From the NCBI GenBank assembly GCA_023515725.1, contig JALDTO010000235.1, positions 646,597 through 710,596 on the forward strand: a stretch of DNA of 64,000 nucleotides. The letters run 5' to 3'. Under the pieces are notes generated by a model. It saw only the letters and a program-made list of their open reading frames with translations, ran no database searches and had not been told where the DNA came from. Position numbers and translations under genes: made by a program. This DNA comes from Amoeboaphelidium protococcarum X5 (lineage: Eukaryota; Fungi; Aphelidiomycota). Below, piece by piece: positions 1,444 to 7,986 of the stretch; the first letter of the stretch is position 1; each line of letters begins with the position of its first letter.

Positions 1444-2454
1444 ATGTCTGGCGTGAAGGCGAAAGAATCTGGAGATAATCTCAATATGTTACAGCAGCAG
1501 CAGCAGTAGTAATAATAATAATAATCTACAAAATTGGACCAATCTGCATACGATGAAGTTGGGAACGAGATGTATGAATCCGCAATGTCTCAAGAAGATG
1601 GCTAAGAAGCTATGAAGTTGCCTAGATTCCTAAGATTTCTCAACTGGTTCAACAACTGGCCTCCTTTGGCGCGCACTTTGGTCTATGTTGTGTTTGGCGG
1701 TGTCATCCTGATGATCCCTGCCGTATGTGACTACCTATTCCTGATCGAAGACAAGAGTGTACCTTTTCTGGAACTTTAGTCAAATGCGAACATTGGTGGG
1801 AGACCGATGATGTTCTGGTTCATCGCTCTGACATGTACCTGGGCTGCGTACTTTCTATCGTCGTGGTTATGGTTGACTGTACCTGTCATTGTGTTGCGAT
1901 TGATTGATCTGCTGTTGGGTAAGTACTACGCTCAGCTGGCCAAGCCTAAGCTTGAATACTTTTAAGTGTTGCGACACTACTTGGCTCTAGTGATTGCCAG
2001 TGTTGTATTGAATGCTGTTATGGAAGTCTTGATTATTAGAGGATCTCGTGATGATTATAAAGGAACTCTGGCTAGCGTTTTGAACTGTCTGATCATTGGT
2101 TTGGTGGCATTGGCCATAGAGAAGTTCCTACTACAGTCCATAGCCGTGGGATTCCATAGAACTGCCTATACCGAGCGTATCGTAAAAGCCAAGTTCTCCG
2201 ACTATGTCGTGGAAAGATTGTACGTTGCTGTTCGCAAACGCAGAAAGCAAGGTAGACAGGGCGGAAACAGTGAAAATAGTTCACCGACTTAAATTAAGCC
2301 GTTCTGGACATACGTACCTACACCCGCTATAAGAGGTAGCGCTAACACTCAGGCTAATGATTAACGCGCTGCTCAGAACATATCACCACAGGAAGAGTCT
2401 ATGGAGTTGAAGTACCTAAATCAGGCTGGCAGAGAGAAGAGAACTTCACAATGA
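1444..2454 (+). CDS. N-terminal (multi-TM) half of an Msy1/Msy2-type MscS-like mechanosensitive channel, 336 aa
   Basis: About 4 TM segments, IGGRPMMFWF and EKFLLQSIAVGFHRTAYTERI..K motifs typical of fungal MscS-like N-halves. No EF-hand or pore domain. Own ATG and TGA. Confidence 0.8.
1492..1524 (+). repeat. Poly-Gln tract encoded by (CAG)5 TAG (TAA)5
   Basis: Mixed CAG/TAG/TAA run in frame within the 1444 ORF. Confidence 0.9.
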
Positions 2455-2550
2455 AAATGAAGTTTAAATGTAATTATATAATTATCGTTCATTGGCGACT
2501 CACACAGATAAACGTGCATTAAATTCAATAATTGTCAACAATAATGATAA

Positions 2551-3849
2551 TCATCCAGTCTTGACTTGATCTTTCAGAGCTGAAGAACCCAAAATTTCAC
2601 GTAAAGCCATCACTGCCTTGTTGTGACGCTTTCGAGTAACATCAATATCCTAAAAGTTTCCCTTGTAATTAATTCGCAATAGAATCTTCAACTTTCCATC
2701 AGCGAATCCATTGTTATTGTCTATATGAACAGATACGGTTGGCAGATAATCTCTGGCGTTCATTCTAACAAATTTAGTCACTTCGTCCTCCAACTGCGCT
2801 AACAATTTATCCACCTTGTCAGATTCTGCATATAAAGTGAATGTCTCAGACTAATTAGGACTTCTTCTATAGTTATAGATAACCTTAGTCTGAAGGATGG
2901 CATTCGGAATTTTGGCCAATTTACCTTCAACATGAACCAGGGTGGTACTGTTGAGGGCGATATTCTTCACAGTGTACAACTCTCCATCAACCACAATCTT
3001 GTCACCTACATCAAATGGGTGCAATACGAATAGAAAGAGGATATTCTCCACCACAGTCTTGGCACTGTTACCAATCACCACACCAGATAGGATGATGAGT
3101 GAACCAAAAGTCAACAGGTACTGAGTAAGCGCAACACCAAACACGCTCAGCCAAATGAACAGCACCACAATGAACGTAATTACCAGCAGAAAACTATCCA
3201 AGCGACCAACTACAGTTCCCAAATCTGCAACACCAGTCTCAATAGCCTTCTTCTCATTCAAAAATTGTTCAATCGCAGTCTTCATCTCCTCCTTCTCAAT
3301 ATCACCATTCCCGTTAGTGTCAAATAGTTTGAAAGCCTTGCGTGCTTCATCTGGAGATGGAAAGTAAGGCACAAAATTGTCAATTGTCACCTCCGACTTT
3401 CCAGGCTCGAGCAGGGCATTAAATATGTCATTAGCCAACTTGCGAGCCTGCTGCACAGATTAGACGTCAGTGTCAGATGCTGAACCACCGATAAAAGTAT
3501 TCAATGCGGCATTAGTCACATCACTTAGCACGCCACGCGTTGTTCTCATCACAGAATTGACACCAGTCACCTCAGTCACGGCATTGACGAAACTGAATGG
3601 CTTCTTCAGTAGATCCTTGGCACTATTCTGCTTCTTGTTACCACCTTTAGACGACCCGGACTTACTCTGTTTAGCACCACTCGACTGACCACTCTCAGGA
3701 CTCAGCGCATCCTCAGAAAATGACACCATGGCAGGATTCTTGCGACGCTGCGAAGGCGGAGATTGCTCAACTGCACTACTACCCACATTGATGAAGTGTT
3801 CAAAACTGTTTGAATTATTCAAATTCTATTCAGACTGATTTCCGCTCAT
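2551..3849 (-). CDS. C-terminal half (EF-hand + MscS pore domain) of an Msy1/Msy2-type MscS-like channel, 432 aa
   Basis: ARKLANDIF, EF-hand AFKLFDTNGNGDIEKEE, TMs, FLFVLHPFDVGD, IPNAILQTKVIYNYRRSP. Continuous frame from ATG 3849 to TGA 2551 with TAR=Gln. Confidence 0.88.
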
Positions 3850-4054
3850 TATTTCGATTTAGAATCTCTTCTTATGACAAAATTATAGTGAGCGAACGGA
3901 ATATGACCAAAATTGTACACTACAACGTAATGAATCGTGGTGTTATATGAGACGGGCTAGTAGGCGATCAATAGTGCGCGATGCAAAGTAAAGATGAGGC
4001 TGAAACATCACTCGGCCAATCAAAGCTTAAAGTGGAACGTTAACGCAAGCCGCT

Positions 4055-5761
4055 TCATCCATTTGAGAAGTATAACGTGTAAAGTGTAGTAATGAAATGT
4101 TACGAAAAGACCATTAGAGGAAAGTTTTATTATTATTAAATGAAAATGGCAGAAATCACGAGACACATGTTGACAATAACGACTATAGCAGTGACAACCC
4201 ATGAGAGATAGAGCATGTAACCCGTTACGGCGAATTCTTAATTCAACGACTGAGTTTGAGGATTATTATCTTGTTCTAGATTTAGATACTACTCACTCGT
4301 TGCCAATATTCCAGATAGCCAGCTAAATCTGGTACTTAACCGCAATGAACGGCCACCACTCATAATTTCTTTACTGCTGACAAAGAGGTTGAGTGGTATG
4401 AGAGCGAATGGTAGTTGACAACTCAATATCACTTGAGATATGACCAAGAGTCTATTCAGTCCATTTTGTCCATATAAAAGCACAGTTATGAGAGCAGGTA
4501 GTATAGCGCACACTCTAGTAAATAATCGCCTAATCACTGGCTTTAATCTCAGATTAAGAAATCCATTCATCACCACCTGACCGGCAATTGTGCCAGTTAT
4601 TGTACTACTTTGACCGCTGGCTAGAAGAGCAATAGCAAACAAGGCCGCTGCACCACTCCCAATGTATTTCTGCAAACTAGCGTGAGCATCTTAAAGTTCA
4701 GCCACTTGCGATGGATCCTTACGAACATCTGGATTAGTATAAAAGGCAGATGCTCCGACTATGAGAATAGTGGCATTAACAATAAACGCGAACACAAGAG
4801 CAACAACCATATCAAATGTGGCATATCTCAGAGTGAGTCGCACGGAATCTTGGAAATTATTACCCGCAGGAGAAGGACTAGTCTCAATAACTGATGTCTG
4901 CACATCTAGCTCAATGTCATCTATACCATCTATAATCTACATACCATCACCATCACCACTCACAGAATCTTCGTGAACCAAGTGTTTATTCTAGCATATT
5001 GACGAGTGCAAGTATAAATTATGAGGCATAACCGTAGCTCCCATTATTCCAATAGCAATTAAAAGGCGCTCGGTCTGAGTGAACATTTATACAATATTAA
5101 GAGGATTAAATCCAGATAGTACGGATATAAAATCAGGTTTGGTATAAAACAACTATGCCATGAAACATATACCAACTACCAAGACAAGTACGAATATAAC
5201 TCCCTCATAAACCCGCTAATATTACGATCCCCACCAGCGAAGAATTAAAAGAACATCAAGAGCAGTGATAAGAACACCCCATTCGAGTGGAAGTCCAAAT
5301 AAAAGATTCAATGCAATGGCACTACCTATAACTTCCGCAAGATCAGTAGCCATAATAGCAATCTCTGTAAGCACATAAAGAACGATATTGACCGGTCGAT
5401 TAAACACCAACTTGCACTGCTAAGCCAAATCCCGCCTTGTCACAACTCCCAAAAGGACGCAATGTGACTAGAAGAACATCGCCATCAGAGAAGTCAGAAG
5501 AACGATACATAAATGAGTATAGCCAAATTTGGCACCGGCACTAATATCAGTTGACCAATTACCCGGGTCCATATATCCCACAGCAATCATATAAGATGGA
5601 CCAATGAATTAGAACAGCGACTTCCAACTGGATTTACCATCGTAAATAACATTCTATGTATGGTCATGATTTTTCGTCGCAGCCTCTAACTGTGTTGCGG
5701 AGCTGTCAACGAAGAACAACTAATGAAGCTTCTGTACCAAATGCTGAAATTATCCAGTCAT
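4055..5761 (-). CDS. NRAMP-family divalent metal (Mn/Fe) transporter, Smf-like
   Basis: [76 protein letters not shown]. The 3' end is uncertain because four TAA codons follow the last TM before TGA 4055. Confidence 0.93.
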
Positions 5762-6152
5762 TTCTTACTCGCCCATTAATACTAGAATTTATAAATAGTG
5801 CTTTTCTCAATATAAACTCTAAACTTCAACAACAACGTATCAAATATGAATGAATTAAACTTTTCTTCGCGAAGAAGAAACAGAAGTCTCTTCTGAGAGG
5901 GAAAGCCTAGGAGGCGCGATCAACAGAACTTAATACACGTTCAAGTTTTGCATTGAATACTCATAGTGATAATGACAATTAAAAAAAGATTGTATATTGC
6001 CAGTAAAAGTCATCTTCCAATAATTGAATATAGTTGAGGAGAGAGAAAATATATGCAGGTATCATCATTAGATCAAAATTATCACGAAAAAGGCAAATAA
6101 TACGATCGACTTTCGTAATCATCTAAATGCATTCAATACAGTAATATTCAAT

Positions 6153-6599
6153 TCACTTTCTAGACTTTTTATCACTATTATTACCCGTATTCAAACTGTC
6201 AGATTCATCCGAGACTTCATCATCGTCTGACTTCCTCAACAGCTGAGCTTCTTGTTTAAGAACGTTCAATTGTCCAAGTTGCTCGTCCGAGAAGGAACTC
6301 AGCCTCGCGCCAATGCTCATTCCAAGTGTACTATCAGATGACTCTTGTCTATTATTGTTACTATTATCATTGGCATTTGTAGACAATTTCAGTTATTATT
6401 CTAATGTGCGTGCATAATTAGACCATTCATTTAGAAATGGTGGTACGAAGGCTGGATCACATTCTTTATGTCGCCTGAACTCATCCTTTGCATACTGATC
6501 ACCAAGATACTTCATGGCAGGTGGAAGTTGGAGGTGCAATCTCAGAATCTTGGCGTACAATTTCAATGCAGGCGTCTTTACTCTCTTTTTCAGCACCAT
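6153..6599 (-). CDS. SDH7: Succinate dehydrogenase assembly factor 3 (Acn9/Sdh7, LYR family)
   Basis: LYAKILRLH..LP..MKYLGDQYAKDEFRRHK...FLNEW..Y and SDEQLGQL. Two ORF-track fragments join through TAA TAA=QQ. Confidence 0.9.
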
Positions 6600-6829
6600 A
6601 CTTTTTATTATAATAATTGTATCAGTATTTTTATACTCTCAGTCAGACTGCCTTTATATCTATCTCTTGGGCGCGAAACGTAATGAATTATTTCATCAAA
6701 GCATTCAGAAAACGTTTCTCCGTCTGAATCGCTGGAATCTCTTTGTTTCAAGTTTTGTTGCTTTTTGTATTTAAAACTTGGTTAGTCATTTTTAATTTAG
6801 GCAATCTGTTAAATAAAATTAGTCAAGCC

Positions 6830-7986
6830 ATGAGCAGTGTAAGCATTTTACTATTGTTTTGATTTAGCGATGGTATACGTTATATATTCTGGGTGTGTAG
6901 TCGATGATTGAAAAGACGTTTAGAGAGTATGACAGTGGAGCGAAAGGTCATTTGAATGTGGGAGAGTTTTGTTAGCTATTGGCTGATATGGATGTCGACG
7001 GTGCCCGCTTTTAACAATGCTTTGATTACATGCTCTCTGGTAATAGTACTAGTGCGAATGTCCTTGATCTTTCTGCATTCAAGAAAGGCTTCGTTAATTT
7101 GTACTTTTGGAAATTTCAAGTTCCCGAGAGCTATAGAAAGTAGAATGCTGCTGCTGCTCCGTCTGTAGATGTAAACGTCAAGTCTTTAGTCTCTAATAAC
7201 AATTTTGTTATTGATGGCAATGTCGTTCGCCTGATCAAGTTGGTGGACATCGTTGCTCAAAAGAGCGCCGTTTAGAGTGTAGCGGTACCTGATGAGAAGA
7301 CTGTCGCTGCACAGAGTGTCGCCGTGGACAAGGTCTCTTAAGATGGCTCACCTGCCGTTGTTAAATAAGCTTCAACCGAACAGCAACAAGTTCCAAGTCA
7401 AACCAAAGCCGAGACTTCTCCTTAAGCCTAAGCGATTGCACCAGCTGCAATTTAAGCTCAACCTGCGGTGTCTCAAACTGCAACTGCTTCCGTGCCTGTC
7501 GCTGCTGGTCGCCCGTCATTGAGCTCATCGTCGGCAGCGGCGGGTAAGACCGGTGTCAATGTTATGCCTGCTTCTCAGACGGTTATCACTCCGGCGGGAT
7601 TGACCAGAAGCACGTCGATGAGAAGAAATGATGGAGCGGGAGGTGGATTGACAAGATCCACTTCTACTAGACGTCCTTAACAATAACCAGGTTAGATTCA
7701 GGTGGGCGTTGCTGGTGCCGCTCGTGGAGGTTAGCCTAACTCTGCTCCTGCTACAGCTCTGCCTCTTGCTGGAAGTTCTGCCACCACTGCTGGTGCTCAA
7801 GTTGGCAATGATCCGGATTGGATGAAAAAGGTTCTTGAGCAGAAGATTATCGAGGCCACTGGTATTGGTAAGAAGGATGACTAAGCTGCCATTAACAAGG
7901 ATCCTACTTGGATGGCGCAATTAAAGAAGGAGTCTGCACCTAGTCCAGTAAGAAAGGATTCTACTGGAAAATCGGAAGGGCAATGA
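6830..7986 (+). CDS. Unknown protein with N-terminal EF-hand-like region and Ala/Ser/Pro-rich tail; intron 6839-6900
   Basis: ATG AGC AGT|GTAAGC...TGTAG, then FREYDSGAKGHLNVGEF (EF-hand-like), long open frame to TGA 7984-7986. Confidence 0.7.

Follow-up and report, generated by a model that had tools for sequence, protein, structure and literature searches.

A Msy1/MSL10-type mechanosensitive channel gene of Amoeboaphelidium protococcarum that was split by an inversion into two convergent genes

Introduction

MscS-family mechanosensitive channels are regarded as single-chain homo-oligomers, in which the outer helices relay tension through covalent hairpins. In FLYC1 and MSL10, six transmembrane (TM) helices are arranged roughly in single file, with TM4 to TM6 corresponding to TM1 to TM3 of Escherichia coli MscS; the linker between TM4 and TM5 is long, partly disordered, and mobile, and in FLYC1 a cytosolic extension of TM4 contacts the cage (R334-D598) and sets the closing kinetics (PMC8844309, PMC10560256). 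The fungal channels Msy1 and Msy2 of Schizosaccharomyces pombe and MscA and MscB of Aspergillus nidulans have the MscS three-helix core and the cage and, N-terminal to them, a minimum of three additional TM helices (PMC9367656). Here we describe a locus of the aphelid Amoeboaphelidium protococcarum X5, a parasite of algae (positions 1444 to 3849 of a 64,000-nucleotide stretch of contig JALDTO010000235.1, hereafter the window), in which sequence comparisons suggest that a channel normally consisting of one chain is probably made from two.

The locus carries two convergent genes, i.e., one for the N-terminal TM bundle (the N-half) and one for the EF-hand, the pore helices, and the cage (the pore half). 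Comparison with outgroups shows that an inversion split a single Msy1/MSL10-type channel gene, and we consider it probable that the two products, which are under selection, reassemble noncovalently. Gene fission as such is already known; a split MscS-family gene was not found in the literature searched, in which full-text searches for aphelids together with mechanosensitive channels, or for a split MscS-family gene, returned no paper. The A. protococcarum genome is duplicated (PMC10608142), and our comparison covers four of its loci, namely, two homeologs from each of two strains (the window, L001, L003, and L004; assemblies GCA_023515745.1 and GCA_023515725.1). The outgroup loci came from Amoeboaphelidium occidentale (L002), from metagenomic contigs of an uncultured relative (L005 to L007), and from Logan contigs (L008 and L009).

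Results

Two intact convergent genes under a variant genetic code

The N-half open reading frame (ORF) runs on the forward strand from an ATG at 1444 to a TGA at 2452 to 2454 and encodes 336 amino acids (aa) with four TM helices. The pore-half ORF runs on the reverse strand from an ATG at 3849 to 3847 to a TGA at 2553 to 2551 and encodes 432 aa with an EF-hand, two TM helices, and an MscS cage. A 96-bp spacer (2455 to 2550) separates the two stops, and both start codons stand in the context AATAATG. This confirmed the tail-to-tail layout that a first-pass annotation of the window had described (two intact convergent ORFs, 96 bp between TGA stops, and ATG codons in an A-rich context), with exact agreement of the coordinates. 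The gene order in the window is EMP24 (+), N-half (+), pore half (-), Nramp (-), and LYR (-).

Under the bacterial or standard code, both ORFs appear broken, and only fragments are found in the region. Their in-frame stops are all TAA or TAG (11 in the N-half and 4 in the pore half), and TGA occurs only as the terminator. Across the window, TGA-delimited ORFs comprise 500 to 1,150 codons with 5 to 46 in-frame TAA/TAG codons each; in the shuffled window, the longest such ORF had at most 409 codons. TAR and CAR codons are exchanged between homeologous copies, even within conserved motifs (e.g., LLQSIAVGFHR), and a run of CAG codons in the poly-Q tract passes directly into TAG TAA TAA. For A. protococcarum, a nuclear code with UAR=Gln has been published (PMC5304391). 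Given the ORF statistics, the TAR/CAR exchanges, and this literature, the window reads TAA and TAG as glutamine, and both ORFs are intact; the first-pass annotation was right to assume a variant code. tRNA and Rfam scans of the 64-kb window gave no matches, and hence no suppressor tRNA to back the code. The poly-Q tract itself (1489 to 1524, near the N terminus of the N-half) is a mixture of CAG, TAG, and TAA codons, and its length and codon choice differ among the four loci.

The N-half is related to the N-terminal domain of Msy1/MSL10-type channels

The N-half gene (1444 to 2454, +; 336 codons plus TGA) encodes a cytoplasmic N-terminal tail with the poly-Q tract, followed by TM1 (1663 to 1740), TM2 (1807 to 1914), TM3 (1921 to 2031), and TM4 (2053 to 2142), all on the forward strand and placed by a hydropathy scan and by the helices of an AlphaFold model (residues 74 to 99, 122 to 157, 160 to 196, and 204 to 271; core pLDDT, 74 to 91). 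In both the scan and the model, the fourth helix continues as a long cytosolic helix. This TM4 extension (2143 to 2256) carries the family-invariant motif FHRxAYxERI (2152 to 2181) and leads into a C-terminal tail (2257 to 2451), read as a remnant of the TM4-TM5 linker, whose PFWTY motif (2296 to 2313) aligns with the P(W/F)WxY motif of unsplit relatives. The only invariant N-half residues in the family alignment A2 are F237, H238, Y242, R245, and two others, and they cluster in TM4 and its cytosolic extension.

The longest stop-free N-half piece (108 aa) was used as a HMMER query against 1.84 billion representatives. The N-half and KAI3652529.1, a 337-aa protein of A. protococcarum, share 98% identity; the 90% cluster of this protein also contains KAI3635427.1, KAI3646382.1, and one 336-aa copy, taken to be the window's own product. 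The window accordingly belongs to A. protococcarum (locus-tag series MIR68), and the aphelid origin supposed in the first-pass annotation was correct. The near-identical homologs of the N-half in the other A. protococcarum loci carry a precomputed match to the Pfam family PF25886 ("Msy1"); our local Pfam copy gave no PF25886 match for the N-half, and the family assignment thus rests on the precomputed matches. A phmmer search of the 108-aa piece against the PDB returned chance matches only. When a profile built from alignment A2 was searched against the whole PDB, the matches were MSL10 (residues 195 to 350; E = 1.7e-6) and FLYC1 (219 to 355; E = 7e-6) only, with the next at E = 0.18. The region matched in these two structures is TM2 to TM4, and MSL10 N316, at the position of FLYC1 R334, falls inside the FHRxAY motif. 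Together, the pairwise and profile searches link the forward-strand gene to Msy-type N termini, as the first-pass annotation had supposed, and identify its product as a homolog of the N-terminal TM1-TM4 domain of Msy1/MSL10-type channels. The description of this product as an auxiliary TM subunit was too narrow, since the N-half also holds TM4, the equivalent of MscS TM1, and the counterpart of the cytosolic helix that contacts the cage in FLYC1.

The pore half carries an EF-hand and an MscS pore and cage

The pore-half gene (2551 to 3849, -; 432 codons plus TGA) begins with a linker remnant and a conserved segment ahead of a canonical 12-residue EF-hand loop, DTNGNGDIEKEE (3286 to 3321), which was recognized by Pfam EF-hand_6 (29.1 bits; cutoff, 25) and EF-hand_1 (28.3 bits; cutoff, 25.4) in a 202-aa piece of the protein. 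Next come TM5 (3133 to 3198), the equivalent of E. coli MscS TM2, and the pore-lining TM6 (3022 to 3126), the equivalent of MscS TM3, both placed by hydropathy, the MSL10 alignment, and the structural model. The cytoplasmic cage consists of a beta domain (2854 to 3021), found by Pfam PF00924, the model, and Foldseek, and an alpha/beta domain (2554 to 2853), delimited by the strands and helices of the model and by Foldseek. These features are likewise on the reverse strand.

The 202-aa piece matched the MscS beta domain PF00924 with 33.3 bits (cutoff, 20.2; E = 5e-8) and aligned with MSL10 435 to 628 and FLYC1 456 to 647 (E = 1e-26 to 1e-27), the aligned region reaching from the last part of the linker through TM5 and the pore helix TM6 into the beta domain. 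The pore half keeps a hinge glycine aligned with MSL10 G556, ahead of the beta domain. The AlphaFold model of the 432-aa protein (mean pLDDT, 58.9; 65 to 84 in the greater part of its folded region) has two long TM helices, after which come the beta and alpha/beta domains, and Foldseek matched it to MSL10 (E = 3e-17), YnaI (1e-9), and MscS (1e-8), as well as to FLYC1 and MSL1. The beta domain, the pore helix, and the cage fold thus place the predicted protein in the MscS superfamily. It is annotated on its own at locus L003, as the 432-aa protein KAI3646381.1. The 202-aa piece found nothing at E <= 1e-20 within the length range in a word-indexed protein database, and no fragment proteins turned up among those derived from transcript assemblies. 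In the same database, the complete A. occidentale protein matched itself alone among the 8,000 candidates to which the search was limited, and a search by region gave just two of the fused GenBank models discussed below.

The halves are complementary and the cut lies in the TM4-TM5 linker

Aligned to the A. occidentale protein KAI3656393.1 (673 aa) by blastp, N-half residues 55 to 319 match residues 45 to 304 (E = 2e-47), and the pore half matches residues 259 to 657 (E = 2e-97). The same order, N-half and then pore half, was found on a 722-aa protein of Paraphelidium tribonemae, a 761-aa Logan protein, and three fungal proteins; the fungal alignments used zygomycete relatives (the Linnemannia, Entomophthora, and Conidiobolus cluster). 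For the N-half, blastp gave E values of 2e-47 to 4e-53 with the single-chain proteins of aphelids and of about 1e-13 to 2e-16 with those of fungi.

In the multiple alignment, the N-half stops soon after P(W/F)WxY, and the pore half can be aligned from PF(S/N)FVNA. The alignment places the cut between these two motifs, where the TM4-TM5 linker is variable and of low complexity, which is where the first-pass annotation had put the break. It leaves the MscS TM1 equivalent on one side and TM2-TM3 on the other and so passes through the conserved three-helix MscS core. It would nevertheless lie at the most tolerant place, given the length, partial disorder, and mobility of the TM4-TM5 linker. By homology the pair belongs to the six-helix Msy1/MSL10 class, with an EF-hand in the TM4-TM5 linker, as is typical of the fungal type; the single polypeptide that defines Msy1/MSL10-type channels is replaced by two convergent ORFs in all four loci.

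Both halves are under purifying selection

Nei-Gojobori estimates of dN/dS, calculated under the organism's own code, were 0.02 to 0.08 for the N-half and 0.04 to 0.06 for the pore half. The neighboring genes gave 0 to 0.09 (EMP24), about 0.10 (Nramp), and 0.26 to 0.69 (LYR). The excess of dS over dN was significant for both halves in each of the three diverged locus pairs tested (Fisher test, p < 1e-21), and neither frameshifts nor TGA codons were found in any copy of either half. Both halves are under strong purifying selection, at least as strong as that on neighboring genes, and by dN/dS both fragments have been retained as functional coding genes. A concern of the first-pass annotation, that one half might evolve neutrally, can therefore be set aside, as dN/dS is far below 1 in both. 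Because dS among the A. protococcarum loci is 0.15 to 0.32, the copies serve as independent witnesses.

Constraint extends to the sequences on either side of the cut. The tail of the N-half has a pN/pS of 0.04 among the four loci, and the head of the pore half has a pN/pS of 0.17. Within the first 23 pore-half codons, the pairwise comparisons of three loci give a total of 4 synonymous differences and no replacement; L003, which was outside this comparison, carries a single N-to-K change. Divergence of the 96-bp spacer that parts the two stops is 17 to 32%, with additional indels, among homeologs, and this spacer evolves about neutrally.

Outgroups carry an unbroken gene

The convergent split is present in 4/4 A. 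protococcarum loci. In A. occidentale (L002), an intact channel gene on the forward strand is followed by Nramp (-) and a LYR-family gene (-). The metagenomic contigs of the uncultured relative (L005 to L007; ENA ERZ4203368, ERZ4204489, and ERZ4205204) have the gene order of A. protococcarum, i.e., G-alpha, CTLH, EMP24, the Msy1-like gene, Nramp, LYR, a 450-aa gene, and carnitine acyltransferase, and every exon of their Msy1-like gene is on the forward strand and collinear (for the spliced gene of L005, each exon was compared separately, using tblastn). The Logan contigs (L008 and L009) carry a collinear, unbroken gene downstream of EMP24. An intact single-gene ortholog thus occurs in each of these outgroup sets (L002, L005 to L007, and L008/L009), that is, at three loci, two of which (those of A. 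occidentale and the metagenomic relative) share the Nramp-LYR neighborhood.

Because the outgroups carry the unbroken gene and 4/4 A. protococcarum loci share the split, the layout reflects an inversion of the gene's 3' half that has become fixed and is no assembly error, in keeping with the fission by inversion that the first-pass annotation had proposed from the window by itself. Its worry that an assembly inversion might have produced the layout is answered by four separately assembled, diverged loci that share it. The simplest history is a single event of this kind, which became fixed ahead of the divergence of homeologs and strains. Around the presumed breakpoints, a search for repeats in inverted or direct orientation gave only short chance matches and no mediating repeat. 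The breakpoints are approximate, above single-base resolution, because the outgroup proteins are only 35 to 45% identical.

Several features of the outgroup genes were recorded along the way. The metagenomic relative has a GC content of 49%, and its channel gene (L005 5450 to 7678, and also L006 and L007) is intact, with short introns. A 48-nucleotide (nt) GTAACC...GGGTAG intron lies inside the EF-hand of this gene, and no in-frame TAA/TAG was seen in the largest L005 exon (6001 to 6870). The A. occidentale ortholog (L002 4552 to 6573) has 0 in-frame TAA/TAG in 673 codons and ends in TGA, which fits that species being without the UAR=Gln code.

Discussion

A proposed two-subunit channel

The following history accounts for these data. 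On the branch that led to A. protococcarum, a single-chain channel gene had its 3' half inverted in place, with one breakpoint in the sequence coding for the disordered TM4-TM5 linker and the other in the short spacer ahead of the convergent Nramp gene. The N-half has retained the old promoter and encodes the N-terminal tail, TM1 to TM4, and the TM4 cytosolic helix; the pore half begins at a new ATG and encodes what remains of the linker, along with the EF-hand, TM5, TM6, and the cytoplasmic cage. Each half may insert in the membrane on its own, since each has an even number of TM helices and both ends cytoplasmic. The N-half would then most likely dock noncovalently onto a heptameric pore half, which would make the protomer whole again with its six helices: TM4 would lie next to TM5 and fill out the tension-sensing paddle, and the FHRxAY helix would be in contact with the cage. 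The result would be a Ca2+-modulated osmotic safety valve of two subunit kinds. For the strictest form of this proposal, an obligate two-gene channel in which seven pore subunits are each completed in trans by a four-helix subunit, the sequence evidence tips our judgment only slightly in favor.

Several points weigh against reassembly of a split channel. The separate expression of the halves and their co-assembly into one channel are what we infer from sequence. Among the 16 HMMER proteins that matched the N-domain, none outside the N-half's own cluster came from A. protococcarum, which favors the proposal; this check covered database proteins, and an unannotated intact paralog may still exist in A. 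protococcarum. When the N-half model was the Foldseek query, the highest TM-scores were those of MSL10 chains, at a nonsignificant level (E = 1.6; TM-score, 0.32). Finally, GenBank fuses the pore half to Nramp in 3/4 loci.

The leading alternative, which we regard as unlikely, accepts the fission and uncouples its products, so that the pore half would be a minimal two-TM channel by itself and the N-half would have a separate role, e.g., in signaling. A signaling role has been reported for the N-terminal region of MSL10. The pore half does contain all of the pore-lining and cage-building parts, in MSL10 and FLYC1 the linker and the outer helices lie at the periphery and show little order, and each half has its own constrained tail. 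However, the strongest conservation in the N-half is found in TM4 and the FHRxAY helix, which contact the channel core in FLYC1, and an equivalent of TM1 was present in every MscS-family member searched. Both halves have also been kept in 4/4 loci at similar rates.

The Nramp neighbor and the fused gene models

The adjacent Nramp gene (4055 to 5776, -; 573 aa) is a conserved neighbor and the synteny anchor of the comparative loci. The fused GenBank models are KAI3632557.1 (window 3781 to 5776, -; 966 aa), KAI3652530.1 (L001 11110 to 14334; 966 aa), and KAI3635426.1 (L004 7122 to 10359; 945 aa); at L003, separate proteins of 573 and 432 aa are annotated. Mapped onto the window, the GT-AG "intron" of KAI3632557.1 (3781 to 4102, -; about 325 nt, boundaries within about 1 nt) extends from GTAACA to GGGTAG, and its removal takes out the last 15 Nramp codons, the stop, the 204-nt spacer, and the first 23 pore-half codons. 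The L004 model uses another donor and removes about 403 nt, cutting into conserved Nramp sequence.

If these models were correct, the pore half would be the C-terminal part of an Nramp-MscS fusion, which we consider improbable. Nramp does adjoin the pore half on the same strand, a phase-compatible GT...AG pair is present in 4/4 loci, and fusion models are used at three of the four annotated loci. The topology would fit if the Nramp C terminus is cytoplasmic, as in eukaryotic Nramp proteins, the N terminus of the pore half being cytoplasmic as well. Yet the same pipeline kept the genes separate at L003, whose coding sequence is almost the same as the window's, although the two differ in the spacer (the L003 donor is GTAAT, not GTAAC, and there is an 11- to 12-nt insertion). 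The donor at L004 differs, with the cut in conserved Nramp sequence noted above; the unambiguous introns nearby are 58 to 64 nt long, so that the proposed intron is five to six times longer; and the outgroup Nramp genes terminate without such an extension. The ATG at 3849 stands in AATAATG, and the 23 codons that would be removed are nearly free of amino acid change.

The region between the Nramp stop and the pore-half ATG (3850 to 4054, -) bears on the same question. It has non-triplet indels and low divergence, 5 to 11% among the four loci compared with a synonymous pS of 0.15 to 0.26 and with 17 to 32% in the 96-bp spacer, and an ORF extending upstream of 3849 in the window is not conserved. 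The frame-shifting indels were dropped as an argument against fusion: indels in an intron leave the exon phase intact, and they show only that the region is noncoding. Because it has diverged less than synonymous sites, as is expected of regulatory DNA, this spacer probably holds the promoter and 5' untranslated region of the pore half together with the Nramp 3' end, which also speaks against a fusion. We favor the view that the Nramp-pore fusion is probably a gene prediction artifact, made easier by TGA being the only codon that ends ORFs in this genome.

Three further observations concern this neighborhood. The window and L003 differ at 0 to 1 position per 100 to 400 nt across both channel genes and the other flanks, and by 6.4% plus an 11-nt indel between window 3850 to 4110 and L003 8407 to 8680, where L004 has the L003 insertion; the difference may reflect a gene conversion tract between homeologs. 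At about 8420 to 8700 of L004, the Nramp stop TGA has become TGG and a 2-bp insertion shifts the tail, giving an ORF 79 codons longer than in the other three copies. A CXXC zinc-binding gene in the L003 2182 to 2791/L001 6183 to 6792 pair is annotated differently between homeologs (160 aa with a 127-nt intron versus 183 aa with a 58-nt intron), which is another sign of uneven gene models.

Trans-splicing that rejoins the halves, so that a single-chain channel is still made, is highly improbable in our view. A usable acceptor (GGGTAG at about 3781) lies near the start of the pore half, and inspection of the sequence showed a weak phase-compatible GT in the N-half tail; no evidence of trans-splicing was seen, the codons flanking the putative sites are under purifying selection, and each gene has its own conserved start or stop. 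We give almost no credence to a misassembly or a decaying pseudogene pair, for which there is only the general prior that inversions can be assembly errors, given a layout common to four diverged loci in two assemblies, the lack of frameshifts and TGA codons in any copy, and dN/dS values of 0.02 to 0.08.

Significance

A split channel made from two gene products would be a natural split-protein experiment, showing which contacts suffice for assembly and gating. If the proposal is true, the pair is a natural heteromeric "split-paddle" member of the MscS family, such a channel can do without a covalent connection from TM4 to TM5, and separate regulation of sensor and pore stoichiometry would be possible. 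The locus also represents a clean, datable gene fission by a single small inversion, with the intact ancestral arrangement found in three outgroup loci. In addition, the three fused GenBank records are probably chimeric and, for the closest relatives of fungi, would mislead both surveys of domain architecture and orthology tables.

Comparison with known systems

The closest counterpart is the A. occidentale protein KAI3656393.1, a positional ortholog with the same domain order, the same Nramp and LYR neighbors, and shared motifs (LPRFLRFL, FHxxAYxERI, PFSFVNA, the EF-hand, and HPxDxGD). Identity to A. occidentale is 35% for the N-half and 41 to 45% for the pore half, compared with about 48% for Nramp and LYR. 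It differs in being a single uninterrupted ORF on one strand, without in-frame TAA/TAG. The fungal Msy1/Msy2 and MscA/MscB channels resemble the aphelid pair in their extra N-terminal TM helices and in the EF-hand ahead of the pore helices, whereas the fungal Msy-type proteins are single chains of 840 to 1,011 aa.

The aphelid halves align with MSL10 and FLYC1 (solved heptamers with six TM helices per chain) in both regions, and the aphelid cut corresponds to the TM4-TM5 linker of these single polypeptides. An EF-hand in that linker is undescribed in the MSL10 and FLYC1 structure papers, the plant side having been compared by description. The plant gate residue F553 is replaced in the alignment by valine in the aphelid pore half. 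E. coli MscS shares with the pore half a kinked pore helix, a beta domain, and the cage fold; its TM1, TM2, and TM3 are contiguous, whereas the aphelid equivalent of TM1 is encoded on a different gene from TM2-TM3. Split cox2 (PMC5374615) is likewise a case of one membrane protein gene that became two complementary genes; there, the protein is a mitochondrial respiratory subunit and the split arose by insertion, whereas the aphelid case concerns a nuclear ion channel gene split by inversion.

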